Notes: a model not told the origin generated them from the letters alone. Shown: positions 11,333 through 47,238, numbered from the whole stretch's first letter. The stretch is 62,775 bases of DNA, filler included, from Klebsormidium nitens (GCA_000708835.1; 7 parts of 7 records of this genome joined end to end with filler, not necessarily neighbours in it); one strand, 5' to 3'. Numbers and translations: made by a program.

Positions 11333-11346
11333 GGTTATGGGCCCAC
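11333..11346 (+). promoter_or_regulatory. Primer-binding site of the half-tRNA(iMet) type
   Basis: GGTTATGGGCCC immediately after the LTR terminal CA. It matches the Drosophila copia/Ty5-type PBS, which is complementary to the iMet anticodon arm. Confidence 0.8.
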
Positions 11347-12984: not shown

Positions 12985-14854
12985 AAGAGCCTATTTGAGA
13001 CCCTCGAGATATTCGGGGGGAGTGGCCGAGAGTTCACGTTCGGTGACAAGGGAACCTTGTGGGCAGAAGGGAGCGCCTCGGTTGAGCTGCTGTGTGCGAC
13101 ACCGACGGGAGATTGTCCGGTGACTGCACGCAAAACGTGATGTAATTCCGAGGGGTTGCGGCAAACCTGATTTTAGTGAGCAAGGCAATCGAGGTCGCGT
13201 TAGTGTTGTTCAAGGAGAACGGCAACTGTGAGCTTGAGGTTGAAGGGGAGGTAGTCCTTAGAGCTCGGACAGTGAAGGGGATCTACGTAGTCTATTGGGC
13301 GGAGAACGCATAGATTTTGAAAGTGGTCCGAGGGGGGCCGCTTTCAGAAAACGAGCGGGGGGGCGCCGCCCCGAGGGAGGACGCGTGCTTCGTCGTGAGA
13401 AAGCCGGAAACGGCCGAGCTCTGGCACCGACGGATGGGGCACGCCGGGTATGAAAACTTGGCAAAGATGGTACAAGACAACCTCGTTGAGGTTGTCGGCG
13501 TGAAACCCGGTGTGTTCAGGGCGCTCAAACTCGGCGTCTGAGCCGTGCATCATGGGGGAGCAAACGCGGCTCCCCTTCTCAAAGTTGGAATTGGTGAGCA
13601 TAGAGCCTCTCGAGCTGGTCCACATGGACGTCTGTGGGCCGATGCCGGTCCCGTCGGTCGAGGGAAACCGGTATTCTTTGACACGTTTTTGGACGACTAC
13701 AGCAAGCTCCCGTTTGTAGTCCCCATAAAGCAAAAGAGCTAGGTGGCCAAGGTCACCGAGCACGTGACTAACCGGTTCGAGTTGCAATCCGATCCGAAGA
13801 AGCTCAGATTGGTGCGGACGGATCGTGGGAAGGAGTACGTCAACAAGGCCCTCAAAGACGTGCAAGGGGACGATGCACGAGTAGGCCGCCCCCTACACGG
13901 CCGAGCAGAACGGGTCGGCAGAGCGGCTCTATCGGCAACTTGAGGAGAAGGTCCGGGCGATGCTCGAAGACTCGGGGCTGCCCAAAGAGATGTGGGCAGG
14001 GGCCGTTGTGACGGCCAACTACACCCGGAACCGGACCCCAGTGAGCGCACATGGGAGGACCCGGTGGGAGGCGCTCTACGGCAAGAAGCCCAACGTGGGG
14101 CACATGCGGGTGTTCTGGGCCCGAGCCGACAGGCACGTTCCGAAGCACAGGCGTCGGAAATTGGATCCAGTAAGCGAGCGGTGTGTGTTCGTGGGGTGTG
14201 AGCCGTCCGGACTCCAAGGCGTACAGAGTGCTCTAGGAGAGCGACGGGAGGATCATGATCTCCCGGGACGTCATCTTTGACGAGGGCGAGGGGTTGTTGA
14301 GCTGTGCTCCGACCCCACGGAGGATTTCCCATAGCCGCCGGCGAGCGCGACACCGCGCCTGCGCCCGCGCCCGCACACGCGCACATGCCCGCGAGCGACC
14401 GCGCGGCCGCGTCGTACGCACGATTTCCAAAACCGACCAAAGTGGGCAAGTTTTGGAAATGATGCGAGAGCGCAGAGCAGAGCCAAAAAGAATGGCGGAG
14501 GACATAAGGATGCCAACACGGGCTGCTCAGAGGTACCCCGCGTGAGACACATGCGCCTGAAGAGTGGCACCGCGCCAACTTGGCGGCGGATACAGAAGCG
14601 GGGGAGCACCCCAAGGAACGGGGTAGCACCCAAAACCGCAGAGTTATCAGGAAGCCGTAGGGGAAGAAGAGAGTGACCTTTGGCATAAGTCCATGGACGA
14701 GGAGATGCGTTTCATATTGGAGAACGGGACGTGGAAGATCGTCGAAAACGGGAAGGGGTCAAGCCGGTTTCCATGTAGTGGGTTTACAAGATCAAGCGGG
14801 ACGCTCACGGNNNNNNNNNNNNNNNNNNNNNNNNNNNNNNNNNNNNNNNNNNNN

Positions 14855-14866
14855 TTAATTAATTAA
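14855..14866. other. Artificial contig-joining linker TTAATTAATTAA (also at 32135, 34510, 47183, 54884 and 59586)
   Basis: The same 12-mer sits in the centre of six 100-nt N-gaps and has stops in all six frames. Confidence 0.95.
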
Positions 14867-14910
14867 NNNNNNNNNNNNNNNNNNNNNNNNNNNNNNNNNN
14901 NNNNNNNNNN

Positions 14911-17900
14911 ACAGCCAGCCCGTCGGAGTGGCCGATGATGCCGTCGTCCGAGTCGTGCGCCCCCAGGTCGTACAGCAATTCACCCCACTCGCACGGCCAG
15001 TGCTCCCACAGCCGCGGGCTCCCACCCCTCGCCGCCTGCTCCAGCTCGATCCCCTCCAGCAATCGCAGCATCGCCCGGTTCTTGTCCCGGACCATCTGGC
15101 GCTGCTCGACCAAGAGGCGGCGTCTGGTGTCTGCAGGCACCGGGCCCTCTCCATCGCCCGGAATGAAGCGGGTCACGAGCAGCACGTCCTCCCTGCCGAG
15201 GGCCTCCTTCAGACCCAGGTACTCGGCCTCGCTCAGTGGCTGGCCCAGCTTCTCGCTCACCGGTCGATGCCTGGAGACGCGTGCTATCAGCTCCCGCAGC
15301 TCGGGTTGCAGTACGAGGCGCCGTTTCATACCGCCACCCTCCAGCCCTGCAGCGCAATAGTCGCGCCCCGCAACCGATTGCTTCTCGAGCGCGGCGCCGT
15401 CTGCAGACCGCCCCGGATGCGTGAACGGCCTGCGGAAGTCGTGCGAGGTCGACCCAAGCCCCCCGGGGCGCTTCCCGCCATCGGAGTTGGCAATCCCCAC
15501 GATCCCATCGCATAGCAAGACCTGTGGGAGCACCATCGAGCAAGTTCATCAGGACTGCTGCGTCAACCGGCAGAAGCAACAGGTAATGTGGATTTATGAA
15601 GGCGTTTGATCCATATATTTGTCTTTTAAGACTTGTTTACAAATCAATCTGATCTGATGCATTTGCTACCATGTCCTTTCAGGACGAAAATGACCCATAA
15701 GGGCTGGTGTTGATTTGTACCGGGTGTCTGATCACTGCTCAAACCACTGGATAATCGGTAGAAGCAACACGTGCAAGGGCTTACGGGTTTCATCGAATGC
15801 ATGCCTTGAGTCGAGCAGCCGCTTTCCAAGCATCCAAGGGCCCTCACCAATTCAACTGCTATGCAGATCCAAGGGAGCTCATTTTCCATCTTCCAATCAA
15901 GATGCTCACCTCCGGGTGCGGACCGCATATGCTGCAGCATTCCAGGAGCTGCCGGCCAACCAGCCGGAAGAAATCGAGGCTCGCCTTCCGCCACGTCTCT
16001 TCTGACAGGACGGCGCACTCTGGTGCCCTCCAGAGGGCCTCCTGCTGCCCCTCCAGCAGCGCCCCAAAGCCCGACTGCCCCCGCTGCATCTGCTTGAGCA
16101 GCAGCTACAGGCTCTCCTGTACAACAATTGTCTGGCGGCTCCAGACATAGAGGCCCAAGTGCTCCCCGTCGAAATGGATGGTGTGCTTCCTCGGGCATTT
16201 GCAGGAGTAGTTTCTGGTGCGCACGGCCTGGCTCCAAGTGGAAGCATGCACAACCGCGTCCTGCCACAGCCCCGCCCACTCTCCACCGCACAGAGGGGGT
16301 TCGAGAGGGCACGGCGCGCTCAGCATCCCAAGGTCGCCCAGCTCATGGAAGTCCCGCCCCACCAGCTTGCTGACTCTGATCGGTCCGCACCTCAGCCGCA
16401 TCACCCACGGGTCGTGAAAGTCCGGGGCGTCGCTCAGCTGGCTCAGCTTCGGCTGCGTCACCTGGACGGCCTGCGTCTCCTGAAGCATGACCGGCGCCCT
16501 TCCCTTGCCCTCATGCTGGCATCCCCGCTGGGCACCCTCCAGCGTGCAGTTGCCGCAGGAGGAAACCCAGCATCGGATCGCTTCCTTGCCTAGCGCCTCC
16601 ATGGGTGGCTCCCGGACACTCTGGGGCGCCACGATCAAAGGAGCCCCGCCCGCGTGACTCCTATACCACTGCTTGCTCCTGCGCGCCCCCGTCCATGGCT
16701 CGCTCACGCTCAGCCCCTGAGGCGCTGATGCGGTCGGCTCAGCTACTCCGAACAATTGCTGGTGCTCTCGGCAGAAGCAGTCCGCACCAGCGCATCCGGC
16801 CGGCTCATGGCGCTGTCCTGATATGAGGCCCATCAGGTGCGCCTCCTCCTCGCTGGCCCCTTCGGAACTCGAGCGCGACTCGCTCCCCCCCTCACCCCTG
16901 CCAAGCGCTCCGTCCCATCGTTCCAGCCACTGCCTCGCCGTACTTAGGGCATCCTGCCCAAGAAGTAGCCCCTGTGCAAAATGGACCTGCCCCGCTCGGA
17001 CGGCCAAGTTCGCAGCGAGAATGTGGCTACAGTCGTGCTGCGACGGACAGCCGTCCCTCTTTCCCTGGCAGTACCAGTCGCCATCAACGCTCCGATGCAG
17101 CATCTTGTGCGCTGGGCTGACCCCCTTAGGGCTGCTTCTCACGGCAAAGAAGCGCCCCGTAGAGTCCGTACCCACCTGCTCGACCAGCCCCGCTCCCCGT
17201 CCCAACTCTCTGGCAGTGGGAAGGTCCCCTTGCTGCAACCCCGTAGAGCGGAGGGCCGCGAGCACCAGCTTATGGACGCAAGGAGCGTCCCTGGCCAGCC
17301 GGCCACGATCGCACGAGCAGTTCGAGTATCCCTGGCTATCCCACCAGCACTCCTCCAGCAGCGCCTTTTCCTTGCTGGGCTTGCCGAGAGCTTTTGGCCT
17401 CGCTCGGTTGTGATCCCAATGCGTCATGTAGAGCCGCAGGGGGCCGGGCGCACATGCGTCTACTCCAGCCGGTACGACTATGCGGCACGTGCCCTCCAGG
17501 ACGCCGCTCAGGAAGAGGCCAGCTTGGGCCGGGATGCCGAGGCGCTCCTCAGGCTGCAGGTGCCAACTAGATCTTTCAGGCAAACTTCCTGACCGCTCTC
17601 GGAAAACAACCTCACGCCTTGCTCACAGTCGGAACTGAACGAGCAGCTCAAGATCGCATCCGGGATTTTGCGCATTATCCCGCCTTTCAAGTGGCGGGCC
17701 ATGAGAAATTCCATGAACAGCATGTAGTCGGTCCTTGTGCTCCCCCTCTTAGCGTGGGCACAGGCAAGACAGTGTGTCCATCGAAATCTCAGGGGGCGTG
17801 CGCAATCGCTTGTAGACGCTTGCTGCATTGTAAATCATCATAGGTTCTATTAAGAAAATATATGCACTCACCAGCATCTCGCGCGCGCGGCTGCCGGCTT

Positions 17901-18400
17901 GCATGCCCCTGTTCAATGCGCTCTCAGCTGCCGCCTTTTTTGGCTAAGTTCTTCCTGCTTACGGTGCTCTCGTTTGAGATCACAACAGCCTCAAGCAGCT
18001 CGTTCGTGAGCTCCAGTTTTTGCCTCCAGCTCCCTGAGGCCTGGCGCTCGAACAACAGCGCATCGTGCTTGCACAGGCTCACGCTCTCTGCATCGGCGCT
18101 GACCTTCAAATCCCCCATCAGCTTGCCCACGCATCCTAGGCAAAGGATCTGCCTCCTCTGCTTGTTTTTGGGCACGCCGCAGCTGACCAAGTAGCCCTTC
18201 ATCGCGCACCTGCGGAAGCTCAGCCTCAAGCTCCCATCCGTACCGCCTGTGCCCTTCCAAACCTGCTGCCTGCAGGTGATGCACCTGCCAGAAATCTGCC
18301 CTATCTCCGCCGGTCGGACGCTATCCTCGCCTACGTAGTAAAGGCCGCGTCCGATCTGAGCTAAATCCGAAGCCAAGTAGTGCTCAGTGGGGGCTGCCAT
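14911..18400 (-). mobile_element. Spliced KDZ (Kyakuja-Dileera-Zisupton)-type transposase gene with SWIM and Cys-cluster domains; has lesions and runs into a gap
   Basis: Exons 18400-17872, 17822-17616, 17553-15910 and 15521 to beyond 14911, with phase-compatible GT-AG introns. SWIM-like CSC..CVH and C..C..CSH motifs. Splicing creates CSICGPHPE-VLLCDG. There is a frameshift in an A-run near 17940 and a TAG at 16105-16107. Confidence 0.7.
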
Positions 18401-19204
18401 GGTCGAAAACCCCCCAGCATGCACCAACATGCACAAAGGCTGTCCCTTGTGAACCAACTGGGAGCTCGACTGACACTGCCTACCTCCGACCATCTTTGTT
18501 CATCCTTCCGGCCTCTCTCTCTCCCTAAGTATGTCTCGCCTCTAGACTGGACTGCTGCCCGGGACGGCGGCCCGCCGGAAGGCTCGAAATTCGATGATAA
18601 CCGCTTCGAAGAGCTCCGGCGGGCCGCCGAGTTCGCTGCAGGGGGGCTGCTGGCGAAATCCTCTTCGGTACCGTTATCAGTCAGGTGACGCTATGCCAAA
18701 ACTCGAGTTTTCAGGACCGTCCGATCGATCGCGAGAACTTAGGGATTGGTAGGACGCATCCCGGCCGTCCGATAAGGCCGACCTTCATTTGGTTGCCCCT
18801 ACAGATATCAACACGGGCTGGTCGAACAAAACGTTAAACTCGGCCGGCTGCCGTTTCAGTGCGTCCTAAAATTAATAAACGTTCTAATATTTAGTGCCGG
18901 TCAAACTACCGGCAGGCTACCGTCTCTGCTTGCTTGCATCTACGAGAATGCGCTACCTATTTAGCCAACCAGCAGGCCTGCGCACAAATTATGACATGAA
19001 CGGGCCGCTGTGCAGCATGGGTCACTTCAACCTGCTTGAACTGGTCACAATTCTGGGAAACGCTCTTGTTTCAAAGTTCAACATCAGGGAGGGGCCCTGC
19101 CTCCAGCCCTGCCTCCTGTGCCCCTGTCCAGCTCATTCGAGGCAGCCCTTTTGCAGAAAAGTCCCCCCAAGAGATGCTGTGTTGCAAGGCCTTGACGTCA
19201 AACA

Positions 19205-22086
19205 ATGAACGGAGACAGGGCGGAGCGCCCTGAGCGAGATGCACTTTTGGAGGGGGCGGACATGCACATGGAAAGGAACAAAGCGCTGGGAGATCTGCCA
19301 ATGTACAGGCAAAGCAGCACGGCATCCGCTGTGGCACAAGGCCAACAGGTAATCTAGAGAACTTGCTAGCTTTGTGCTGCAAACACTTCGCGGTGCTGCA
19401 AACCCTTCGCGTCATTGAGGAGAGGCCAACTTGTGAAGAGAAGTCTGCTTTGATATTGCGGCGGCACCAGATAATATGTCCTTGGAATCTTAAAGATGGT
19501 CATTTCAAGGTATATGTGTTGAAAGCAGGGTGGCCGTAATGATCAGAAGAGTTCTTTGGAGATTTTGTGGAACTTTTTAGCGTGAGTGTAAGGGTCAAGA
19601 AACAAGGACTGCAAGCACTATGCCTGCTTGTGTCTTGGCAACATTGCAGTTTTCTGTCAACTCTGGCAAGCAAATTTTTGTACAACTATCATTATGCATT
19701 TTGGCCTTGATTACGTACATTTGTACGTAGGATGCTGCCAAATGGTGACATCTCCACAGCATTGTGTGAGGTTGCCAGCTACAGTGATGTTACTCATTGA
19801 TATCACCAGTGCACCATGATTGAGATTTTCGACCTCACTTTGTAGCAGAGAATGAGTAGCATTGTTTTGCTTTGGTCACCCCTCTCGGGGGGGGAATTCG
19901 TGGAATTTGTGGACCTCTTGAAGCCCAAGGAACTGCAACTTTCACATATTCTGGTCTTTGCTCCCGTCTTGTATCTCGATCTCTTCGCGCTCACTCGCCT
20001 TGCTCCTGTGCAATCTTGTGCAGGCTTGCCTCTCTCTGATAACTTCCTGGACCAGCAAGAAGTTTCTCAATGGCTGGTGAGTGCACGCCGGTGTTTCGTG
20101 GTCCGTTGTTGCTGCTTGGTTCTGTTAACTCGGTCCGCCGGCCTTTGAGTGAAAATGGGCCATGCTAACTGAATGTCGGCACGCTGCTGTCGTGCACACC
20201 TCTTGCTCCTTACCTGCACAACGGTTGCTAGTTTTCTGTTTGGTCGTAAATAGATAATCAGGAGTTTCAAATGCCCCTCCAACCCCTCTTTGATCCATGG
20301 GCCTGTGAACGGTTTCCACTTTGTCTCTGTCCAGTTGCTCACTCCTTTTTGCTATGCAGTGTCATCCTATTCCCCATGGTGGTCACATTCTACATTGCGT
20401 GGTGGTTCCTCAACTTCTTCGACGGGTTCTTCTCTCCCCTCTATGAGGCCACCATCGGCTTCCATGTCTTTGGTAAGACCTCCTAGATTGATTTGCAGAA
20501 AAAGGGGTCACATAGACGAGCGCCCTCGTTCTGCTCAGAACTTGCACTAAGATCCTCGACTTTAAAGAACCTATTTCAGTGATATTTTTCGTGACTAGTA
20601 GAGTGCTTGGAGAAGAAGTCATATGCAATCATCTGCCAAAGTGCGCTACCTCCTTTTGTTTTGAAGAATATGGAAGCGTGTGGCCACAGGAGATTCAATC
20701 ATCGAATTGTGTAAGCCTAACCAAGCTTGGCATGCGCAGGCCTGGGTTTCGTGACCTCGATGGTTTTCATCTTCCTGGTGGGAGTTATCGTATCGAGCTG
20801 GATCGGGGCGTCTATTCTGTGGGTGGGCGAGTGGTTCATCCGCAGGATGCCGCTCATCAAGCACATCTACTCTGCTTCGAAGCAGATCAGCCAGGCCATC
20901 TCGCCAGGTAAACCATTGCTCCGGCCATCAGGGACGGAAGATAGAATTTCTAGTGCTCGTTGAAAATCCCCTCAAAGAGCCAAGATGAGTCTCTTTGGTG
21001 CGATTGGTGGAAGCTGTTTCGCTCTTCAGAGACTGCCGTTCTGTCTGCACCTTGATGATTGAATAATGTGTGGTCAGCCTTTTGTCAATTCACAGCTGAT
21101 AGTCACCTTGCAGATACAGAAATTTTGAACTATTTGTCTGGAAAGAATGGTCTCGTCCATTCGTTGCATTTGATGTTTGTTGTAAATCTGTTGAAGAAAC
21201 TTCATTTCTGGTTTTGCAGAAAACTCAACGGCTGCATTCAAGGAGGTGGCCATCATTCGGCATCCACGCGTGGGGGAGTACGCTTTCGCTTTCATCACTT
21301 CTACGGTCACCTTACAGGTCGGTGTTTCGTCCTGACCCAATGTAGCAGTCCATTGTCATCAATTGCCTCTGTCTGAAGCGTGGAGGTCATATGCTTACTG
21401 TCTGAAGCGTGGAGGTCATATGCTTGCTGTAAGTTCTGACGGTTGCACAAGCCCTTTATAATCAATCTCAATGGAATGTACCAAAGGGTTGGGGTTATGA
21501 GGCTGCAGCTGGCTGCAGTTTATATGCCCATCATTGTTGCTTGCTCACATTGGACTGCACTATTGGTAGTGCCAAAAACGTCCTGAGGTTTTCTGGTCCA
21601 CAACCAAAGTGATTTCTCCTGAACTGCAGACCCCTGACGGCGAGGAGGAGTTGTATACAGTATATGTCCCCACCAATCACCTGTACATAGGCGACATCTT
21701 CCTCATACGATCTGCGGACATCATCCGACCGAATCTGTCAGTACGGGAGGGCATAGGTATGAGCAGGCCGGTTGTTTGCCCCTTCGACTCAGATTGCATC
21801 GTTGACTTTGAGATCTTCTTCCAAGTCGGACGCACTTGGTCCCACTCGACCATAATGACCCACTACTTTACGATCTGTCGTTCTGTGAAAGCTTTAGGCT
21901 GGACTTTTGTACTGTGGCATTGTGTCGTTGGCAGCCACCTCCGAAAAGGTCATCGTGTTTCGAGCCTTGGCGCCAACTAAAATATGATGATTGGAAGATC
22001 TGAATGTTTTCACTATTTTGCGTGCAGAGATCGTCGTGTCTGGAGGCATGGCGGTCCCGTCGCTAATCACACCGATCGAACCATAG
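19205..22086 (+). CDS. COV1: COV1/LCV-like (DUF502) membrane protein, multi-exon
   Basis: Spliced peptides SWTSKKFLNGC-VILFPMVVTFY, GLGFVTS, MPLIKHIYSASKQIS, FKEVAIIRHPRVGEY, VYVPTNHLYIGD and IVVSGGM. Exon 1 (19205-19348) is assigned on splice phase only. Confidence 0.9.
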
Positions 22087-34565: not shown

Positions 34566-35426
34566 CAATTTTGAGAGTTCTGCCAACAAGAGCACCCTGC
34601 CGTGTGGCGGTTCCAAACTTGGGCTCGAGCAATCTTGCTCGAAGCTTGGACTTTCCACACGCCCCGGCATGGGCGCATCAATGCTTGCTCCCAAAACCTC
34701 GCCACCCTCCTCCTCATCAATTGTTGCCGCACCGGTACTATGACGTGCATGATTGTTGACCAATTCTGCAAGCCAAATGGGCATAACTTGGCACGCTTCA
34801 TAGCTGGGAGGTCCATTTATCCACTCATATGTTGCAAGCTCGCCGTGAGCATTCAAGTAGCTTGTTGGTGGAGCGAACACGACACCACCGATTCCTCTTC
34901 CATCAACGCCAAAAGTCTCGTTGTCGACCTTGAGACCTTGAAAATCTCGTCTCCACGTGAGACCTGGAGAGTCGAGCTTGAAGCACAAGTGCAATCCACC
35001 AGAGCCGGTCCTTGCTTTCAGTGTCTCCGGCTCCCCGTGGATCTCAACAAGTTGCTGCCAGAGCTCGGTCCCTGGTCGCTTGCCCCCTTTTGCAGCTACA
35101 TCAATGTCGATCACATACACTCGACTGACTCCTGCAAGTATCGCAAGCCCGTTTGCATCTGGCTTCTCTTTCATTGCTTGATTGATGGATTGCCCCCATG
35201 CCTCTGTATCTTTGATGTGTGCATACTTGTCAGGAAAGTCAGCTTGCTTCGAGCCTCTATTCCGATCCCAAGAGACGGACACTGGAAGTGTGTATAAGCC
35301 GTTGTTACAGAGTCGTTGTATCTCGTTCCTGATGCTGACGGGTCCTAGGGCCTTGGGGTCTCTGGCTGTCTGAGCCTTCCCCTAGGATCGAGAGGCGTTT
35401 GCCCGTTCAACATCCGACGTAGCCAT
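34566..35426 (-). pseudogene. Prim-Pol (bifunctional DNA primase/polymerase) domain gene; 3' end lost in a gap
   Basis: NGLAILAG..VYVIDID, RTGSGGLHL and GVDGRGIGGVVFAPPT motifs. The ATG at 35426 is followed by an in-frame TAG at 35382-35384, after which the frame is open to the gap. Confidence 0.85.
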
Positions 35427-35529
35427 TCCTTTCTATACTCCAGTGAGGAAAGAATATGAGACGATTGAAACGCGCTCTCTTGACATCTGCGTTTTTGTAC
35501 CACTTTTTTTCGAAGCTTCATTGTAGGGC

Positions 35530-35871
35530 GTGATTATGGTCCAAAACACGATTTCTTCAAGTGACACCGAGCTCTATCCATGCCATTGCCGCGTTTGTGA
35601 GACGAGTCGTGATTACCAAAAGGAACACCATGCGGAACATGCGCAGACCGTTCGAAGATATTATGGCCGCAACCGGGAGAACATTTTCATGCAAAAAGCA
35701 TACAAACGCTTGCTTGCTGGGACCACAAGAAAGCTCCACAAGGCCACAATTCAGCGCTTGATAGACGCCGGGTATGATGTGTCCCGGACGGCCGCCCCCT
35801 TGGAAACGGAAGGCGAGTCCAAAGCCCCCACCGTGTCTTTGAGTGCGTTCACAAGCATCGAAGTCTCCTGA
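35530..35871 (+). CDS. Small basic hypothetical protein (CxCxxC, then YYGRNRENI)
   Basis: 113-aa ORF filling the space between Prim-Pol and the recombinase, converging on the latter with a 40-bp gap. Confidence 0.5.
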   Translation: MIMVQNTISSSDTELYPCHCRVCETSRDYQKEHHAEHAQTVRRYYGRNRENIFMQKAYKRLLAGTTRKLHKATIQRLIDAGYDVSRTAAPLETEGESKAPTVSLSAFTSIEVS

Positions 35872-35911
35872 ATGAGGGGTAAGTGGCAAGGTGGTCGAGG
35901 AGCCAGAGCGT

Positions 35912-36964
35912 CTAGAATTGGATTCGAGATCCATCGGGTCTGTACTTGAGTTCGTAATGGCGCATTGCTACTGGAGCCGTGTGCAACATCGATCTGGCAA
36001 GCTGGTCTCTGTCCTGAAGGGATGGCGCATCCTTCATCGCATTGCTGACAGTGATCTTTCGAAGGAGGCACGATCCCAAATTTGGAATGGGGTAAATTGC
36101 CGCCAGAAACTTGGTCAAGTAGCCGGACCCCATTGGAGCGTCCGGTGTCCTCATTCGACTGAGCAGGTACTTTCGCAGAAAAATATCAAGACTTTCCGCA
36201 ATCACGTTGCAAAGCCGGACCGGTATATTAAGAACCTGCCGTCCATGCGTTTTGTCGGTTTTGTAGGAGTTCAGGTGGAGCCTATAACTGCCCTTTGCAT
36301 ACTGTAGAAGGTAGTTGCGAGATCCCGCCATCAGTTCACGCGCGGCAGTGCTCCCAACCTCTTCGAAGCGCACAATCGGAAGATCGCTCCAGTCGTTCCG
36401 AATCGCCGGCATCTGAAGGTACAGAGACAACACCAAATAGCGACACAGAGTCACTTTGTCCCCAACCGTGACCTCTTCTGGCTTTTTTGGCGCAATGGAC
36501 CGATTGACCCTCCGTTGAAGCTCAATGCGGCGTTGATTGATCTCGTCCAAGGACTTCCAGTTTTTGGCCTCACGCTCTGACATGTGCTGGGGTGGTCGAG
36601 CTTCTTCCATGGCCTTTCTAACGGCACAGTATCGTTTGAAAAGTGCCTCGTAGGTCTGTTGATCACTGGGCCATAGTTTCCGAGCAATAACAAGGAGAGG
36701 GCTGATGCTCGTTGCTTGGGTCGGTAGTTTGTCTGAAAACACGTTATCCAGATACTCTATGATCTTGGTCGTATCTCGGACCCACTCAAGTGACTCGAAG
36801 TCCTCTCTTGGAGCATGCATGCTCTTGAAGAGGCGCATGACTCGAGCACAGTACTGCTCGACCGTGTGCGGCTTTCGTGTCGAGTCATCAAAGATTTCGT
36901 GAAGCAGCCGTTCTGCTGTCGACAAAGTTGCTATAACCTTTGTGTTTGCATCCGAAGCTGCCAT
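35912..36964 (-). CDS. Tyrosine recombinase, Polinton-like-virus/virophage (OLV11-like) type
   Basis: Intact, intronless 350-aa ORF with catalytic residues in order: PAIRND (R), YKTDKTHG (K), LLRK (R), MLH (H) and RHY (Y). Confidence 0.88.
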   Translation of the reverse strand: MAASDANTKVIATLSTAERLLHEIFDDSTRKPHTVEQYCARVMRLFKSMHAPREDFESLEWVRDTTKIIEYLDNVFSDKLPTQATSISPLLVIARKLWPSDQQTYEALFKRYCAVRKAMEEARPPQHMSEREAKNWKSLDEINQRRIELQRRVNRSIAPKKPEEVTVGDKVTLCRYLVLSLYLQMPAIRNDWSDLPIVRFEEVGSTAARELMAGSRNYLLQYAKGSYRLHLNSYKTDKTHGRQVLNIPVRLCNVIAESLDIFLRKYLLSRMRTPDAPMGSGYLTKFLAAIYPIPNLGSCLLRKITVSNAMKDAPSLQDRDQLARSMLHTAPVAMRHYELKYRPDGSRIQF

Positions 36965-37225
36965 GCCTCTGGTATCAGGATACCGAGAAATTAAAGATGA
37001 ACGGCATGTGGCCGCAGAATGCTCAGATACCGAATATCCGTGTTCATCTTTGTATTCACCGTTTTGGCGGCACCTAAAAGCTTTTCATGGTTATCTTCCG
37101 CGCAAAAGCTTCTAAAAGCCGATATGGGGGCTTTGACGCCCCTCTTTTATCGGCCGATATATGACTATTGCCAGATACACGAATATGGATGTACAGAATT
37201 TCTAAAACGGGACCATTTCAGCAAT

Positions 37226-37783
37226 TCAGTATCTGGGAGACACATTGTGTGGGGATTCGGTGGCATGGCGAAGTTTGTTGGGATTTGCAAGCGCCTCTAA
37301 TTCCAAGATTGGTGCCTCGCTCCACACCATGCTACGGGCATATTGGGCACTCGATGGAGAACGGGCTCGGATGTCTGTGCAAGCGGTTGGAAGATCCGAC
37401 TCTCGCTCATACGACATGTTCTTCAATCGGGATTCTCTTGAACGTAGCTTCTTTGCTTGACGTTGAGCGCGAGACGCGTTCTTGAGGGCAACCCGCGAAC
37501 TGACCTTAACAGCAAATGGGCCATGGATGCCGCTTCGATCCCAATATGAGTGAAATCCTTCAGCATTCAGAGATCGCACGAGCGCTCTGGTAATATGACG
37601 CAAGTTGACTGGTTCTGCAAGAGCGCGGATTCCTGCAAGGGCTGCTGGATCAAGAATGGTTTCAAGCATCCCAAACTCTCTGTAAGATCTCACTATTGCG
37701 GTCTTTCCACTCTCAAAAACAGCTCGATCCATCCGCTCGATTGCAAAAGTGGTTGGAGGACGATAGCCCAAAATTGCGTCCAT
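37226..37783 (-). CDS. ORF-X, conserved hypothetical protein (copy 1)
   Basis: 185-aa ORF. A diverged paralogue at 54940-55475 supports that it is coding. Confidence 0.75.
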   Translation of the reverse strand: MDAILGYRPPTTFAIERMDRAVFESGKTAIVRSYREFGMLETILDPAALAGIRALAEPVNLRHITRALVRSLNAEGFHSYWDRSGIHGPFAVKVSSRVALKNASRAQRQAKKLRSRESRLKNMSYERESDLPTACTDIRARSPSSAQYARSMVWSEAPILELEALANPNKLRHATESPHNVSPRY

Positions 37784-37848
37784 TCAAGTCAAGGATTCTA
37801 CGGTGCACCAAGAAAAAAGGAATACACCGTTTCCATAAGGTCACCTTA

Positions 37849-38144
37849 CACTTAACCATACCACCTAATATGAGTTGAATACTGTAACTCACGGAGCGAG
37901 TCGACAGGAGGACATGACGGACATGAGATGCTCGTGTCCAAGTCCGGGTCCCACTTGACCATACCATCTAATCTGAGTGGAATATTGTAATTCATGGAGC
38001 GAGTCGACAGGAGGACCGGACGGACAGGAAATGCTCGTGTCCAAGTCCGGCTTGCACTTGACTGGACCACCGAGATTGTTTGAACATTGTGAATCTTTAT
38101 TAAACGAATTGGAGGACATGATGGACAAAAGATACATGTGTCCA
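37849..38144. repeat. 103-bp tandem repeat (2.1 copies) plus a partial third core
   Basis: Units start at 37849, 37952 and 38055. The core recurs at 38111-38144. Confidence 0.9.
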
Positions 38145-38613
38145 GCCATTTTGTGCTTTAGTCGTACGATTCCTCGTATGCTACAACCAAGCCGGCCGAC
38201 ATGTGAGAGTGGCGGCCCAACCTTAGATACATACATATTAGCAACCTCGGCCGAGATCCGAAAAGTTTATACTACAATCCGTTATAATTTCTTTCTTCTC
38301 CAGGGAAGGGATTATAACAGACTAGTAGTACAAACTTTTCCCTTTGGTTCTGGATTGATGATATGTATGTATGTAAGTTTATACCGGAAAAGATGCAATG
38401 TTGTAATGGACTTTTTGGAGAAGAGAATATAAGAGATTAGTAGTACGAAGTTTTCCTTGTGGGATCCAATTGCCAATATGTATGTATGTAAGGCCATACC
38501 GGGAAAGATACAACATTCACACTAAGCAACAGCCTAAAGTACTTAAGTTTCACTTAATACAATCAATCCTGGCCAATTTTCCAAACCACGAGTATTCAGT
38601 GGTTCCTCTCCTC

Positions 38614-41600
38614 CTATTCCGTCTTAACCTCTAGGGCTTTCAGCGCAAGACCCTTATATCCTCGCTCCGTTACGCCGCAATACTTTACACCAAGGCCAAG
38701 TTTGCTGGGCTTCTCTGGACCCGAGAAGCCGTGGTTGTTCATTGCCGACTTCAGCGACTTGGTGTCGAGCGAGCAAATATGGCCGACGCACTTGCCGCCC
38801 ACCATCCTCTGCGGGTCGTTGTACGCCTTGAGGGCATCGCTCGTCGAGATGAAGAGGTCATCGCCCTTGACGCAGCTGTTGAGGACGAAGTTGTCGAAAT
38901 CGTCCGCCGCCTCTTCGTAGTCCTGCAGGGCGTCCATGCTCCGCTTCGGCATGAGGTACAGCTGCTGTCCGTTCTGGTACCACTTCACCGCTCCTGCGAC
39001 CAGCCATGCGAGCATGTTCTGCAAGGTGCTCAGCTTGGTGAGGAGTCGCGTGTCTACCAGCCCGTGCAACGGGTTGGCCGGATCGTACCCTTTCTCGTGG
39101 GGCGAGAAGTAGCGCCGCACGAAGCAAACCAGCTGGAGGCGGCGCCGGAGGGCAACGGACCAGGTCTTGTCCGTCCGCGGGAGGTAGTTCGTGCAGATGA
39201 TTAGCTGCAAAAAGGATTCGAAAAGGGCGCAATCAGAGTTTGGCTGGCTCACTTCAACAAATCCGAGCATGCCACAAGAGATCAAGCCCTCTTGCCGCTG
39301 ACAAGAGATCAAGTCCTACTGTTGCTGATCTTCATTCAAGTGCAAGAGTTCGATCGCAATCCATGCTGTGCCATAGACTGCTGACGAACATATATTGGCC
39401 TCACCAGAACGGTTGCGGTGAACGTAACATAGTCCCGGAACAAAGGCCGAGCGGTGATGACATCGCTGCCGGTAAGCTTTTTCATACCGGCCTCGTTGAG
39501 CGAATCGGATCTGTCGGTCTCTTCGACCACCGCTAGTAGCGCTCCAGCAAGCCCTGCGCAAAAAGCAAAGATGTTCCGATAAAAACACGCAGATTGGATA
39601 GCCCAGAAGACAGGATCGAAAGGACGGACACGAGAATTTGCTGGCGGACTGATCATTGCATTTCCGACAATATTCGATGAGGTAAATGCTGAGTCAGGAC
39701 ATTGTAGTTTGCAAGACGATCAGACAGGATCGACAAGACGAACACGATAATTTGCCATCAGACAAACTGTCATGCATCCCTAAAGGAATGAGATGCAGCA
39801 TCATATTTGACTTTTGGAGAAAGAGGACGTTCTGGTAGAGTCTCACCCGCTTCGAGCGGCGAAGCGGCCCCCTTGTGGGCGGCTCGCTGCCCTTTGGAGT
39901 TCACCAGAATCTCCTTGCCGACATTCTTGAAGGCGGCGCCGAGGAGCTTGCGCAGCAGGGCGAGGAAAACGCTCTTGCCTGCACTCCCCTCGCCAACAAA
40001 GATCGGCAGTACCTGAGAAGTATTTTGAGGAAAAGACTTCACAGGGGTGCAGATGTGGAGGCCACCTTCCACGAGAGTCCTCTGTTGTGACCTTCACCAC
40101 AAAACGGGGGAAGCGCCAAGACCTTCGCATAAATGGCTGGCAGTCGATGGGCCAAAGATTCACAACCTAGTCTCACAGCATTTGGTCTTATAGCAATTGG
40201 TCAATGGCGATCCCGTGCTAATGGCCGAAGACCTCATGCGATTGTTGGGCTGTTGAAGTTTCAAGAAGCCCGTGAATACATCAAGTCCATGAGTCACTTG
40301 AAAGGAGCACATACCTGATTGCTCGTATGACCAGTCAGCCCGTACCCCAGCAGAACCTGGAGGTGCTCCAGAGCGGCCGGCCCATCCTCTCCGGAGGCGT
40401 GCATGATGTCCTCCAAGAACCGAACCATCTCGCCCCTCGGAAATGACAACCCAGCGCGGAAGTACGGCCAATCGATCACCCGGCTGTTCATGAACTGCAG
40501 TGCAAATTGCAGACCCATGAGAATGTCGGACAGCAAAGACGGCACGGACGGTCAGGTTTCCCAAAAACGTACAAATAATCGATCTGAGAAGCCGATTTAT
40601 TGTATCTATCTGAATCTCGATAGTCCTGATAGATGTAGCCAAATACTTTGTCCTTTCACCAAAATGCAAGATTGTGACCATCTACATCTGAATTGCAAGA
40701 GCAATTGCCTAAGTGATTGTTGATTGATAAAGGAGGTCCACCGTCTGGCCGGTGGACCTGGCCGATGCCTCCATGACGCGAACTTCTTGATGAAGTCCTT
40801 GAAACTAATCTGCACGGTTTTTGCGCGAGCACGGAATCATCACTCACCCGGGGGTGATGCGGGAGCAGCTCGCCAGTCCGCAAGTCGATGACGCCGTTCG
40901 CCACAGCCAGGAAGTCCTTCTGCACGTCCAGTAGGGACTGGAAGCTGGGCTGATAGAAGTACTCCTTGCATGTGCCCATGATGTTGGACATCTTTGCATT
41001 GAAGTTGACATTGATCAGCCTCTCCTCCTTCTCCGGCTTGAACTGCTTCCCGCCACCCACCGACTTCGACCTGATTGAAGGGCCTCCCTTCACCGCCAAT
41101 CCGCTGTCTTCATCGCCTGCCGGTCCGTTGGCCATGGCGATCGAACGCCCTTCTCCCTCCCCTTGTTCTGCTTCTTGCATGTAAGCGGCCTCGATCTTGG
41201 AGAGCTCCTCGCGGAGCACCCGCAGGATCCGGCCGCCGCTCTCGTCCTTGGCCCAGCAACGACCGGACCAGTAGTACGAGCCCGAGGAGGTGAAGGCGAA
41301 TTTCAGGCCCGTCCGAGCGTAGAGGCGCTCCAGGATGATGGCGCCACCAACATCCCCTGTACGTACAAGAACTTGCTGTTTGAGAAAGAAGCCTCACATG
41401 TCCTTGCCAGCAGCTAAGGGGCGCGCACTAAAGGCGAGATTCTATGAAGAAGCAAATGTAGCGACCAGTCGTAGCTCGGGAGCTACTACTGCTGTCAGAC
41501 TGAAGAACGGAAAAACGTGCGAGATTTGCTAAAAGGCAGCTGCAGGACCAATCGTGGCTCGCGAGCTACCATTGCTCTTAGATTGAAGAACAGACACGTG

Positions 41601-42559
41601 CGGAATTCATTAGAAAGCAAAAGCAGTTGTAGGGACCTTGTAGCTCGGGAGCTACTATTGCTGTCAAACTGAAGAATAAAAGGATGCAATCACACAACAA
41701 AGATGTGCGCCCTACAAGTTGTCAGGTTGTTAGAAGGCCAAACGGGCCTGCAGGTCTGCTCGAGTTGAGCGAGCAAAGAGTAAAAAATCTAGAATGCGAT
41801 TGGAGGTAGCAACCGTAGGCCTGGCCTACCACAGCATTCTCAAAGAAAGGGGCAGTATTGCAAGCTGTAACTTGATAGCTTCATAGGCGTAATTTCCAGT
41901 CACGCCTTCACGAGAAACAGTGCTGACTGACGACCATTCGACTCACCTTTCTTGATATTCAGGTTCTCTCGAAGGAAGGGCAGCGGCAGCAGCTGCCGGT
42001 CGGAGAACAGGTGGTCCCTCTCGCTGTTCAGGGGCGGGCTGTCGCCAAAGGCCGCGGCGATCGGCAGGGGGAGAACGCCCAGGCGGAAGTTGCCTGACCT
42101 CGGGGTGGCCTTGCAGCTCTCCCCGTGGCAGATGTACGTCACCTCGGACCCCCGCCGCAGGAGCCCGAAGTTGGTGCTGTCGTGCACCCTCGCGCGAGTT
42201 GCCGGGAAGTAGGGGCACGTCACGCGCCCGCCAGGCGCGTTCTGGAACCCGTAGATGACCCCAGGGCCCGTGGCGGGCGGCTTGGCGGCGCAAAAGATCG
42301 AGGTGTTGTCGCCCCAGGTCGACAGCAGCTTCTCGAGCTCGCGCACCACCTCCGACCGAAGCTCGGGGTCCGCCAGGTCTGGTTCTTCAAAAGAAGACGC
42401 CCCCTCAGAGCTCCCCTCGGCCTCCACTTCTGCGTCGGTGCCGCCCGTCCGACCCTCTTGCACCTGTTGCCCGCAAAAAGGGTCTGCGACCATCTGGCAG
42501 AGGCGAGGCGCTTTCAGTGCAAAGCCACGTGCGGCCACGACTTTCGAGGTTTCTTCCAT
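38614..42559 (-). CDS. D5-like SF3 helicase with an N-terminal Cys/His domain and five spliceosomal introns
   Basis: Exons 42559-41947, 41356-40848, 40494-40315, 40012-39847, 39553-39405 and 39204-38614 give 2208 nt in one frame. Motifs: D5_N (YYWSGRCWAKD, ANGVIDLRTGELLPH), Walker A GEGSAGKS, Walker B AVVEE, motif C IICTN and LRRRL. An upstream exon cannot be excluded. Confidence 0.9.
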
Positions 42560-43228
42560 GGGACACTGCTTTGACCAACCACTTCTGGATGTCACACCCG
42601 TAATGATTTATGGATACAACCAATTTTTCTTATCACTGGCTACAACTTTTTTAAGAATGATAACTAGGCAGATTGTAGGTAGTAAGACAAGTTGTACACA
42701 AAATGTACAAGCTGTTCACTGCGTTGATGAAGCTTGGCCTCAAGTGAGTTGTCCAGAACAAGGGCCACAGTCAATCAAGAGGTCAACCTGACTGCCGCTC
42801 AACACCAGCCTGACCGCCTGATTGGCGGCCCAGTATCAACCTGACCACATTCGTAAAATGAGGCCCACAGCAGCCCCGGAGAAGAACTACTAGGGGCGAA
42901 GCCTAAAGACGAGCTCAAAACCAGCCTTGCACTGGACCATCCTACAACGAGTCCCAGCGCCTACACAAAAGTCAATTCCGTTAGGTACCAGGGTGCAAGC
43001 AGAATCCGCTTGAAGGTACCACGACCGGGCGAAGACATCCAAAGCCAACCAAGGCATCGTGCAGAAGAGTCAGAGCCAATATTGCCCCACGAGTTGGCAG
43101 CAAGAGCGAACGAATAGCTGAATCCGTGTGATTGTACACCACCAGAATACCAATGACGATTCTGTATACATTTTTGAAAGAGCTGGTTGTATGAGCCCGC
43201 TGATGCATGAGCAAAAGCAGATGCACAG

Positions 43229-46155
43229 TCATAGTGGTGAGCGCGGGATCCTAACCCCGATGGGCATGGGGCCTGCATCGCAGGGCGCGTCCGCGCTCGA
43301 CTCTGCATCGCTGGCCCCGCCACTCTCCACCTTGTCTACGCAATTCTCAGTGCGTGTGCTCGCAACAGGCGAGCGGACCCCTTGTTCTGCCGAAGCGGCA
43401 TCCACCTGCAGAGAAAGAGCTGGAACACTGAGAATCGGCGACAGGAGAATAACGTGTTTTTGCTGTCGATCGTGTCTGCTAGGCCTAAGAAGCACGAAGG
43501 GCGACGAGCATCAGAGCGCAGAGGGGCGACAGGACAGAGACACGTCCTTAATGTCCATCCTGTCTGTCTGCTAAAGCACAAAAGGCAAAATGCATGAGAG
43601 CAAGGACGGCGACAGGAAAAAGACATTGATGTCCGTCCTGTCCTCTCTGAGAGAGGACCCCGCGTCATGGCTCACCACAGTTGTTGCGGGTCCCGCGCTC
43701 AACTGCGCCCCACCGGCCGCGCCGCTCTCCACCTCGTCCATGGGGTCGGCAGTGCGCGCGCTTACATGGGGCCGGACCTCAGGCGAGCGGAGCTCTTCCT
43801 TCGCAGAGTCGTTTCTTGTCTGCAGAGGGAGAGTGTAAGATGAGCAACGGCGGCAGAAGACATACATGTCTCTGAGCACTGTCTGACGTGTCTGCCAGAG
43901 GAGCGGAGCGCGGCTGGCGGCACAAGAACACGTGGAATTGCTTGGCAGTCTTGCCTGCCAGCCAAGCCCTGAGGAATGGGCGGTGACGAAATAATCATAT
44001 GAATATGCTGTCGTGTTTGCGAGGCAAGCAATTAAAAGCATGCGCCAGGCTCTGATGAAATGAACGATGACTTGACTGTGCACAACCAGATAAACTTGTG
44101 GTCAATAGTTGGATCAGCATGGATCCGCCTTGTATGGAGACATTCAGATGATTGGTGGAATGGCCGGGTGCAAGAGTTAACGCCAGCCTCACCACATCAA
44201 GTGCAGTGCTGTGCGGGGATTCCCCCCCACCCCCGTCATCCTGCGGCAGCGCTTCCTGGGTCTTGGGTTGTCCTTCGAGCTCTCCTCTCGCTCGGGTTTC
44301 ATCGACCTGGAGAAAGGGAGACGAAGAAGGGGCATGCATCAATTGTTTGCTGATGCTTTAAAGAGTCAGTCAGTTCCAGACTTAAGGGCGACTTCAAAAA
44401 CCACCAATCGTGAAGCTCACAATAGGTCACGTGCAGAAAAGGGTTCTCGTTCTTGCATTACACCTGAGTGCTCAAGAACCAGACTCAACCACATGCGCCA
44501 GACACTCGACGCATAATGAACATGCGCCAAATTGTGTGCGTGCACTTCAGGCATCACAAGCGCATCCGAGCCTATAACACTTTCGATTGGTCTGATGGGT
44601 CAAAAGCTGGCAAGTCTCACCTTTAATGCTTTAACGTGCAGCCGATCGCTGGCGACTGTGTCTTGCAGTTGAGGATTCTCCACGATGTTACGACGACGCT
44701 TCTTGTTTGCCAAACGCTTGGTCGACCCTTCCTCAGATGCGCTTGGGCCCGAGTAGACCGGGCTTGCAGGCTCGTACAGTCCCATCTTCTGCAATTCAAC
44801 GCGGCAAAAGGATGAGCTGGTGCTCAGTACTCATTCGCAAGCGTGGACTTTGAAACATGCATATCATGCAGCTTGCAGGCCCCACGTCCTACGGCCCAAG
44901 GTCGGCCCGAAATGAGTGCTGAATCAGCACGACAGCAGCCACGAGATTAGCCGGGTACAACAAGCAATACCAAGCAGAACACAATGAGCTTCAAATCAGC
45001 CCAACAGCAAGACCCCAAATCAGCTCCAAAACGGGCCTCAACCAGCCCACGACGGCCCCAAAATCAGACCCACAGCAGGCCCGACATCAGCCCCAAAGCA
45101 GACCCCAAACCAACCCTGGCAGCGGCCTTAATCCAGCTCCATAGGGGCACGAGCCAGCTCGGGCAGCGGGGGGCAAACAGCCCCACAGCAAGCTCGGAAT
45201 TCGCCCCACAGCAGGACCAAAAAACCCCAACAAGAAGCTTCAAATTAGCCCCCACCGCAAGTAAGACATCGGCCAACAGCGGGCTCTCGATCAGCCCAAC
45301 AGCGGGTCCAAAAGCAGCCCACAGCAGGCCTCAAGTCAGCCCGACAAAGTGCAACAAATCAGCCCCACAGCAAGCGCTAAATCAGCCAAACGACAAGCAA
45401 CACGTCAGCCCGACAGCGGGCGTAATATCAGCCTGACAGCGGGTGCAAGTCAGCTTGCGCCCTCTTGCCAATCCAGTTCATGTAGATACGAAGCTCAGAG
45501 AAGCAATATGACTTGCATGCTTTGCGCTTTTGCTGTAGAAAGTGCCCACAACACAGACAGGCTTTGGCATACTTGGTTGCATGAAAAGCTGACCTCAGAG
45601 GCACATAGAAGCACACAGTATACACCATCAGCCGGGACCCCTGGAAGGTTAAGCAAGAGGAGAAGGTTTGACTCCAAATCTTTACATGGGACGAAAAGAT
45701 CATTGCATCCACTTTCATCGAACATGTTGATACCAATCATAACACAATCAGAGACGCGCTCCAAATCAGCTCCTTAGCAAGCCTCCAATCAGCCCAAAAG
45801 CAAGCGCACAATCAGAGCAACGACAGTGGCGCCAGACCCTGGCACTTGTTTTGCATGTGCTACAATCCTTCACTTGACCAGGAAAGCAGAGCATGCAGAG
45901 CATATCAAAAACAATTGACCTGGTGACAGCACATGCAGTGGAGAGAAGGATGGTACTTACCAATCGCTGGCAAGAGCGTGCCGCTTTTATTGTGCTGTGC
46001 GTCTCTGGCCCCCGTGTCAAGACAACTAGACGTTTCTGCCTTGCCGCACTCCTTGCATGCTCTGCCCCTTGAAGATGCTTGTATGCAGGCCTAAGCTCCT
46101 CTCTCTTTCTGAAGATGTTTCTTGAATCTTCCAAGATGGGGTGGATTTTAGCCAC
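43229..46155 (-). CDS. Possible multi-exon gene of unknown function
   Basis: Several GC-rich segments with AG acceptors (about 44788, 44308, 43822 and 43410) and plausible GT donors. No recognisable domain. Confidence 0.3.
44920..45445 (+). repeat. Degenerate tandem array with a period of about 22 bp (consensus near AAATCAGCCCAACAGCAGGCCC)
   Basis: Recurrent ATCAGCCC/ACAGC motifs across about 500 bp. Confidence 0.7.
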
Positions 46156-47238
46156 ATGGCAAACATGGAAGGTGACTTGAGGCCGCCACGCCTTGCCACC
46201 ACCATGCCACTGCCTGCCGCCCCCAGCTCAACACCTACCCCTGAAAGATAGCCACCAGCTGCGGGCCTGCGCCAGCTCTTGCCAGCGCCAACTTGCACTA
46301 CCAGCTCAGACAGCAGCTGAAAAATGCCAAGCAGCATCACCTCTTGCAGCTGCCAGCTGCGCCGTGCAATGTGGTGCAACCACCTAATGATTTGCTGCGC
46401 CCTTTCATGCCACCAACAGCTGGCGCATTTAGCGCAAGTCCTTAGCAGTTTGACGCAGCGCGCCATTGCAACTGGGCTACAATGTCCAAGGCGCCACTCG
46501 CAATGACAATCCAAATTCGATTGGTGTTTGTAAAGATCGTTTTTACAGCTGAGCTTGAACCTGCTGACTTGGTTCAAAAAGTCACCCTTAAGCTGAGCTT
46601 CCAGCAAGACTACCGTACTGTAAAGAGGTTGATGTAACTGGCGATGTCGAAGAAAGGTGAGAACCCAGCTACTACGGCTCGGCCTGCCCCTGTTGGCTGA
46701 GTTAGTGGAAAAGACGGGGTCAGACAGAAGAAAGTTGCCTTTCTCCCGGCATATGATCGACCATACCTGTAGAAATGTCTGAATATTAGTATCGACAGAG
46801 CCTACAGACACGAAGACGGGACAGACAGGAGAAAGTTGTTTCTCGCGGCACAGTAGAAATGTCGGAAATTTGTAATTAAGGTGGTAGGACGGTAATTCAG
46901 GTTGGATTGACCCTGGTTTACGTTCTGGTTCATAGAATGTTCAAAACTAAACCAAATCAGGTTTCGTCTTCTCCAATGGCTTCGAGACACCCTCGGGGTC
47001 CTCTCGAAGCTCCTCTAACCACCTCGAAGTAGTTTGGGTCAGTCTGAGAAACCCTGCCAACTCCAAACAACCTGGTTCAAAGGGGTATTTCCATTGGATT
47101 TTCTGCCTGTCAACTGCCACGATAAATTTCCTTCGAAGNNNNNNNNNNNNNNNNNNNNNNNNNNNNNNNNNNNNNNNNNNNNTTAATTAATTAANNNNNN
47201 NNNNNNNNNNNNNNNNNNNNNNNNNNNNNNNNNNNNNN

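Follow-up and report, generated by a model that had tools for sequence, protein, structure and literature searches.

Recombinase and primase-helicase genes in a Klebsormidium-like genome, probably the interior of a giant KDZ/Zisupton-like DNA transposon

The window is the whole stretch of DNA presented here, 62,775 nucleotides long with filler included. The genomic piece analysed within it covers positions 34566-47138 and is free of N. Its left part carries a tyrosine recombinase (YR), primase-helicase genes and repeats, and is best explained as an internal, partly truncated segment from one copy of a multi-copy family. The closest proteins come from Klebsormidium nitens and from Klebsormidium-like metagenome contigs. 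With spliceosomal introns present and K. nitens as the nearest source, a setting in the eukaryotic nuclear genome of a Klebsormidium-like streptophyte alga is supported. An earlier note, made from the sequence alone, had placed a capsid-less kit of replication and recombination genes in a eukaryotic chromosome, and had read it as a self-replicating element mobilised by its recombinase, or as a viral satellite. The analysis supports the presence of the kit and leads to a different reading of the element. The features of the piece are as follows, where ORF stands for open reading frame, AEP for archaeo-eukaryotic primase, SF3 for superfamily 3 and pI for isoelectric point.

34566-35426, minus strand: N-terminal part (AEP primase-polymerase, or Prim-Pol, domain) of Prim-Pol-helicase B, cut by the left edge of the piece, with one in-frame stop in the visible part
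35530-35871, plus strand: small basic Cys/His ORF ("Zn-ORF"), 113 codons, pI 8.9, opposite to its neighbours
35912-36964, minus strand: divergent tyrosine recombinase, 350 residues, intact and intron-less, assigned from a family alignment and a PDB profile match
37226-37783, minus strand: ORF-X, 185 residues, intact, the conserved partner of the recombinase
37849-38144, no strand: tandem array of a 103-bp unit in about 2.9 copies (Tandem Repeats Finder and a repeat finder), rich in GGACA/TGTCC pentamers
38219-38513, no strand: AT-rich block with two 94-nt direct repeats and 24-26-nt inverted arms
38614-42559, minus strand: helicase A, with D5_N and SF3 helicase domains and the Walker A motif in exon 4; six exons at 42559-41947 (from the first ATG), 41356-40848, 40494-40315, 40012-39847, 39553-39405 and 39204-38614
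42608-47138, no strand: right flank, not recognisably part of the family, with 23-nt degenerate repeats at 44909-45804

Prim-Pol, small ORF, recombinase, ORF-X, repeat block and D5/SF3 helicase had all been named in the earlier note, and each was verified by sequence searches. The close packing described there also holds: the four left genes are separated by about 40-260 bp, and the small ORF is the only gene of the piece on the plus strand. The recombinase, ORF-X and the Zn-ORF are full length in this copy. No capsid, packaging ATPase or pPolB gene was matched in 34566-47138 by Pfam or PHROGs, again as the note had it, both of which detect eukaryotic double-jelly-roll capsids poorly. Rfam families and tRNAs are likewise absent from the piece.

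Searched alone, the 350-residue recombinase ORF has no match in Pfam, PHROG, NCBIfam or PDB. A protein search returned 23 homologues that are 50-89% identical to it, most of them from two Joint Genome Institute (JGI) samples and one, KFL_014070010, from K. nitens, and the family comprises at least 23 distinct copies in this range. A profile search of 1.8 billion representative sequences extended it to 2362 relatives. R189, N217 and K235 do not vary in an alignment of 76 of these sequences, at least 90% of which also keep R302, H328 and Y337. The catalytic order R...K...(H)xxR...H/W...Y is present, with Cys299 in place of the usual His before R302 in the close family. The 76-sequence profile matches PDB integrases (3nkh, E 5e-6; 4a8e, E 2e-3), while nine of the 76 relatives match Pfam Phage_integrase (PF00589) and five match SAM-like N-terminal domains. 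On this transitive evidence of invariant catalytic residues and integrase matches, the ORF is therefore assigned as a divergent tyrosine recombinase of phage-integrase type. Its AlphaFold2 (AF2) model has a mean confidence (pLDDT) of 52, too poor for a fold search; Foldseek lists many Cre entries, all with E > 0.6. The ratio of nonsynonymous to synonymous substitution rates (dN/dS) against other copies is 0.07-0.13, which indicates purifying selection.

ORF-X has no direct family match in Pfam, PHROG, NCBIfam or PDB. It has 13 homologues at 52-90% identity, and its dN/dS is 0.15-0.32. The AF2 model (pLDDT 51) is again too poor for a fold search, and the best Foldseek entries, MarR and GntR proteins at E > 0.2, give only a weak, model-based hint of a winged-helix fold. 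The Zn-ORF has no Pfam match. It is kept in six related loci (L001, L003, L005, L006, L008 and L009; the L numbers denote fetched loci) at 31-50% amino acid identity, with C19, C21 and H38 invariant in a C-x-C...H pattern. It is probably a zinc-binding or DNA-binding accessory protein. A minus-strand ORF that overlaps it, at 35557-35934, lacks such conservation.

Two primase-helicase genes have to be told apart. At the left edge, the minus-strand frame 34566-35381 matches the Pfam Prim-Pol domain (PF09250, E 2.5e-14) and a PHROG DNA primase (E 4.5e-11), and thus holds the AEP Prim-Pol domain. It is 79% identical in nucleotides to L009 and 57% identical in amino acids to the Prim-Pol of L003, whose ORF runs on into a D5_N/DUF5906 helicase. 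By this likeness to helicase B of L003, the gene in the piece therefore extends past the edge. The L003 helicase B itself matches a C962R-type primase in PDB (E 1.8e-8) and, more weakly, D5-type proteins.

Helicase A, at the other end of the gene set, has D5_N followed by an SF3 helicase with Walker A. D5_N is matched at E 8e-11 on four minus-strand pieces (38617-41393). Across these four pieces the NCBIfam profile TIGR01613 ("phage/plasmid primase, P4 family") and the profiles for the P4-type primase C-terminus and for PHROG primases follow in consecutive order. Exon 1 of the L009 counterpart opens with a Prim-Pol domain, and this domain is missing from the present copy. PHROGs, Pfam and a family-specific profile found no second Prim-Pol upstream of helicase A in the piece. 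Homology to relatives ends at about 42470. A local GC peak (66% against about 52%) lies at 42066-42565 in exon 1, where homology to L009 ends and the Prim-Pol domain is missing.

By sequence comparison, helicase A is a second, distant paralogue of Prim-Pol-helicase B and a separate gene. The earlier note had treated Prim-Pol and helicase as one split kit; instead, the left Prim-Pol heads a Prim-Pol-helicase of its own that runs off the piece. Recent tandem duplication of the two genes was also considered and rejected, since their Prim-Pol domains are only about 30% identical and introns interrupt just one of the genes. In L005 and L012 the upstream helicase paralogues have precomputed Pfam Herpes_ori_bp matches, which helicase A of the present copy lacks. 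L012 also contains a DUF8368 ORF.

The locus is collinear with L009 through helicase A, ORF-X with the recombinase, and Prim-Pol B. Between the two copies, helicase A shows six conserved blocks separated by unalignable stretches of differing length. The blocks end in G|GTRWG and restart after YAG|, giving five GT-AG introns at identical positions in both copies. Exon joining was restricted to these five common introns. The six joined exons form 751 codons that have no internal stop and close on a stop codon; in the L009 counterpart a single internal stop occurs. Identity between the two copies is 66-77% in the exons and 21-35% in the introns, and dN/dS is about 0.17. The joined protein aligns collinearly, in one alignment that crosses four exon junctions, with the unspliced L003 paralogue (363-716 against 296-646). 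Thus the host-type introns that the earlier note had seen in the helicase are confirmed. Intron 1 also contains three 37-nt units about 85 nt apart (41471-41676), each starting with the 16-nt palindrome GTAGCTCGGGAGCTAC.

Host-type introns in an open frame, together with genes under purifying selection, are also what an ordinary, non-mobile host gene cluster that had been segmentally duplicated would show. Such a cluster is very improbable here. Diverged copies of the family number in the dozens; they lie on separate contigs in differing surroundings, and many of them are broken or truncated. Moreover, homology between copies stops sharply at an inverted repeat, and the unit so bounded includes a transposase-like gene, as described below.

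The architecture of the family was taken from loci fetched around homologues and is written here with the recombinase on the plus strand. The recurrent order begins with a spliced Prim-Pol-helicase A, followed by arrays of 101-105-bp repeats and, in some copies, two or three further ORFs. Next come ORF-X, the recombinase, the Zn-ORF on the opposite strand and helicase B, in which Prim-Pol, D5_N and SF3 helicase form one continuous ORF. The last part is a long multi-exon KDZ (Zisupton-like) transposase-like gene on the opposite strand. This architecture and its collinearity are seen in L003, L008, L009/L011 and L012, and the unit measures about 20-25 kb in the fuller copies. Across the tested genes dN/dS is 0.07-0.32, which indicates purifying selection between copies.

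The order is also kept at much greater distance. L012, whose recombinase is 50% identical, has the same gene order. L005, from a different eukaryotic assembly, carries an upstream DUF5906 helicase, ORF-X, recombinase, Zn-ORF and Prim-Pol-helicase, with a Ty3-type retroelement and an RPO41-type gene as neighbours. Its recombinase is 27% identical and its ORF-X, at the same position, 38%. The linkage of recombinase, Prim-Pol-helicase and KDZ gene thus persists down to 27% recombinase identity. One further observation concerns a single contig: a short RVT_1 fragment lies between helicase A and ORF-X (L009 7769-7954, equal to L011 15574-15759). It is probably a nested retroelement remnant, and it is absent from the present copy.

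For the transposase-like gene 49 homologues were found, of which K. nitens contributes 14; UniRef names one "Transposase", and a neighbour is named "SWIM-type". Eight of the ten homologues tested have CxC4 and/or KDZ Pfam matches, in the canonical order where both occur. A KDZ-family profile matches the ORF that occupies this position, in this orientation, in L012 (E 8.5e-9), L005 (E 2e-7) and the L001 remnant (E 3e-27). Four small ORFs that adjoin the transposase ORF upstream were considered as capsid genes. They proved to be exons of one K. nitens gene model, that of the transposase gene itself, and are therefore not capsid candidates.

The ends of the unit can be placed by comparing copies. 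Homology among L003, L008 and L009 stops at one common point, and homology among L011, L006 and L001 starts at one common point. An inverted-repeat core of about 22 bp, CCAAATGAAGTTCGGnCTAA, lies at the left ends (L011, L006, L001) and recurs inverted at the right ends (L003, L008, L009). L011 and L009 are one contig, on which both ends are found about 25.5 kb apart. Since the inverted core lies 7-12 nt inside the homology boundary, terminal repeats sought in the outermost 19-30 nt were not found. The left end starts with the same 4 bases with which the right end finishes in two of three copies.

These relatives change the reading of the locus. The piece is not self-contained, being the interior of a unit of about 20-25 kb with an inverted-repeat core at both ends. 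Mobilisation by the recombinase is also put in doubt: a transposase-like gene adjoins the Prim-Pol-helicase in every informative long copy. With inverted-repeat ends and a constant KDZ-like gene, mobilisation by the recombinase alone is therefore not the simplest reading. The locus is instead rather likely to be the conserved replication-recombination interior of a family of giant, inverted-repeat-bounded, KDZ/Zisupton-like DNA transposons.

Several observations weigh against this reading. All KDZ and CxC4 Pfam matches fall below the curated cut-offs (best 24.5 against 26.6 bits; E 7e-5 for CxC4 and 2.5e-5 for KDZ), and Pfam has no match on the opposite-strand ORFs of L012 and L005. No target-site duplication is seen at L011/L009, the one element with both ends, whose exact ends are uncertain by a few bases. 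The piece contains neither inverted-repeat end nor the transposase gene, and its membership in the unit is judged from collinearity with relatives. Helicase A and the repeat block do not keep one relative order (the present copy, L003 and L008 differ from L011), which makes the family a rearranged, mosaic one. Finally, the replication and recombination roles are assigned by homology alone, and the absence of capsid genes is judged from Pfam and PHROGs, which are weak for eukaryotic double-jelly-roll capsids.

A different account separates the module of ORF-X, recombinase, Zn-ORF and Prim-Pol-helicase from the transposon. The module would be an autonomous capsid-less replicon with the repeat block as its origin. 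It would be moved by the recombinase via a circle, and possibly be a satellite of a virus; the KDZ gene and inverted repeats would come from a merely associated transposon. The module is indeed compact and lacks introns, which both helicase A and the transposase gene have. No part of the element is conserved more deeply than its four genes, all of which can still be recognised in L005 (27-38% identity), and in L004 relatives of the recombinase family are found among giant-virus-like genes. The shared 4 bases at the element ends would fit a recombinase crossover core, but also chance. Against these points, the transposase-like gene holds the same place and orientation in the L001 remnant, L003, L008, L009, L012 and L005. 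Homology between copies is unbroken from the module through the transposase to the common end, and no boundary or att-like repeat specific to the module was found. As for the viral satellite, nothing ties the element to a helper virus, genes that redirect capsids were not found, and the resemblance is an analogy of gene kits. No close relatives of the recombinase turned up in scans of IMG/VR viral contigs, and none in a scan of a metagenome contig collection. An autonomous replicon is thus unlikely.

A decayed, endogenised large DNA virus or polinton-like virus would also account for some of the genes. In that case genes for capsid and packaging would either be situated beyond the piece or have disappeared, and segmental duplication of the remnants would have followed. 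Prim-Pol, D5_N and SF3 together are the architecture of giant-virus D5-type primase-helicases, in line with the PDB matches of the L003 helicase B to C962R- and D5-type primases. The L004 relative of the recombinase adjoins EsV_1_7_cys, SET, JmjC and TnpB-like genes, and giant-virus endogenisation in Klebsormidium is on record (PMC11244446). In five relatives, however (L003, L008, L009/L011, L012 and L005), no viral hallmark gene has a Pfam match within about 10 kb on either side. Double-jelly-roll capsid, penton and FtsK-type ATPase in particular are without a Pfam or PHROG match in the piece or in these flanks. The Nucleocytoviricota core genes (major capsid, A32 ATPase, PolB and VLTF3) are not found in the locus or the five relatives either, and the likeness is confined to the type of primase-helicase. 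The sharp common ends with an inverted core, the purifying selection between copies and the old shared spliceosomal introns in one helicase also argue against a decayed virus, which is accordingly quite improbable. In sum, the gene set belongs to a multi-copy family with conserved linkage, and no capsid or ATPase gene was matched nearby by Pfam or PHROGs; the two findings that the earlier note had named as counting against its reading were thus not made.

The L004 region (10001-20942) is of interest in its own right. It holds a 313-residue relative of the recombinase (28% identity) beside EsV_1_7_cys, Methyltransf_24, DUF5901, SET, JmjC and Cas12f1-like/TnpB genes. It looks like a giant-virus-like or Fanzor-bearing region from the same JGI sample. 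A further contig, L013 (1-20948; ENA ERZ15185595), has a large palindromic gene order: two mirrored copies each of a 315-residue recombinase relative and of a 411-residue ORF stand face to face. Runs of small ORFs are mirrored as well, and Pfam has no matches there.

Between ORF-X and helicase A lies the repeat block. The pentamers GGACA/TGTCC reach 27 per kb in the 103-bp array against 2.5 per kb in the whole piece (11-fold). They are 3-6-fold enriched in the arrays of other copies despite divergence of the unit. Arrays of 101-105-bp units hold the same place in L003, L006, L008 and L011. The adjoining AT-rich block has a GC content of about 0.39 against about 0.52, and in L011, L006 and L001 its homologues are found some 200-600 bp inward of the left terminal inverted-repeat core. 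The repeat block may act as an iteron-type origin next to an AT-rich region of unwinding, in line with the origin-like block of the earlier note. Just as well, it may supply subterminal transposase-binding repeats of the kind seen in other elements of the giant KDZ group. Arrays of about 100 bp also occur in both orientations and on both sides of a helicase A remnant (L003 4104-4502 and 6097-7038; L008 2400-6176), which suggests array-mediated rearrangements.

The right flank of the piece (42608-47138) has no Pfam, PHROG, Rfam or tRNA match, and by blastn and tblastx it resembles none of the fetched loci. The sole match is a weak tblastn alignment of 35 amino acids between 43250-43333 and an L009 ORF. 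The array of about 23-nt degenerate repeats at 44909-45804 (motif ...ATCAGCCC.ACAGC...) produces a long low-complexity plus-strand ORF, which has no homologue in the fetched loci.

A mechanism can be proposed for the transposon reading. The process would start with a KDZ transposase of DDE type, which would act at the inverted-repeat ends to excise and insert the unit. At the GGACA-rich arrays and the AT-rich block, DNA would be primed and unwound by the Prim-Pol/SF3 helicases, allowing an excised or nascent copy to be replicated. The recombinase, aided by the two small DNA-binding-type proteins, may resolve or re-integrate copies that are circular or multimeric, in the manner of plasmids and integrative elements. 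Particles would not be formed. In its strongest form this proposal describes a "transposon-plasmid hybrid": a giant DDE (KDZ) transposon equipped with an AEP primase-polymerase/SF3 helicase module, an iteron-type origin and a tyrosine recombinase, whose episomal copy is replicated and then resolved or re-integrated, and which is widespread in algae and other eukaryotes. This stronger form is offered tentatively, as a doubtful though conceivable extension.

Parts of this arrangement are known from several systems. Giant Plavaka/KDZ transposons with accessory genes and tandem arrays occur in red algae (bioRxiv 10.1101/2025.02.11.637652). Large KDZ elements (KDZ1-3) are known in Cryptococcus, where the combination of CxC4, KDZ and SWIM is termed the Zisupton architecture (PMC11343200). 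The giant KDZ group (Zisupton, Kyakuja, Dileera, the Plavaka elements of red algae and fungi, and KDZ1-3) shares with the Klebsormidium element a long intron-bearing CxC4 and KDZ transposase gene (a putative one in Klebsormidium), terminal inverted repeats, a size above 10-20 kb, conserved accessory genes and end-proximal tandem arrays. Its accessory genes differ, being TET/JBP, methylase/SET and ParB-like genes; no recombinase with two Prim-Pol/SF3 helicases is reported in the papers found. The Klebsormidium element, for its part, is placed in the group by sub-threshold matches and shows no target-site duplication. In Amoebidium, gene clusters with a tyrosine recombinase are flanked by a Plavaka transposase (PMC11244446). 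These giant repeats are alike in joining a recombinase with a KDZ-related transposase in large, repeated, intron-poor eukaryotic units. The likeness is one of description; the Amoebidium units are tandem gene clusters of up to 50 kb, with no primase-helicase mentioned.

Other systems share the gene kit. Polinton-like viruses and virophages combine a tyrosine recombinase integrase with a Prim-Pol/D5-type helicase module and integrate in protist and algal genomes. The Klebsormidium element differs in having no major or minor capsid, packaging ATPase or protease detected by Pfam or PHROGs. It also differs in its putative DDE transposase, its introns and its inverted-repeat-bounded unit of about 25 kb, and no relatives of it turned up in IMG/VR. 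P4-type satellites, PICI (phage-inducible chromosomal islands) and prokaryotic integrative elements with a P4-alpha-like primase-helicase likewise have an integrase, a primase/SF3 helicase (compare the TIGR01613 match), an iteron-type origin, to which the repeat block may correspond, and no capsid genes. These are elements of bacteria, however, which need a helper phage and owe their movement solely to the integrase, whereas the present element is eukaryotic, has a transposase-like gene and has no known helper. Cryptons are eukaryotic DNA elements that encode a tyrosine recombinase, but essentially nothing else, and lack inverted-repeat ends. The Klebsormidium recombinase is instead phage-integrase-like and travels with replication and transposase-like genes inside inverted-repeat ends. 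Finally, the D5-type primase-helicases of large DNA viruses have the same order of AEP Prim-Pol, D5_N and SF3, a likeness that for helicase B holds only at family level. Identity is low, and the Klebsormidium element has two paralogues, one of them with five introns, in a transposon context. In the literature searched, no report was found of a eukaryotic element that joins a DDE transposase, a tyrosine recombinase and Prim-Pol/SF3 helicases.

Purifying selection, shared introns and relatives at 27% identity in another eukaryote together suggest that the Klebsormidium family is probably a widespread but unannotated type of transposon. Otherwise its genes will be scored wrongly, in algal genomes, as insertions of giant viruses. 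A functional module would bring together, in one nuclear element, cut-and-paste transposons, integrative plasmids and the replication machinery of giant and polinton-like viruses. If the "transposon-plasmid hybrid" were true, it would be a previously undescribed class, a primase-based counterpart of self-synthesising Polintons and of casposons. The family thus offers a concrete case for asking how capsid-less replicons and viruses swap genes.

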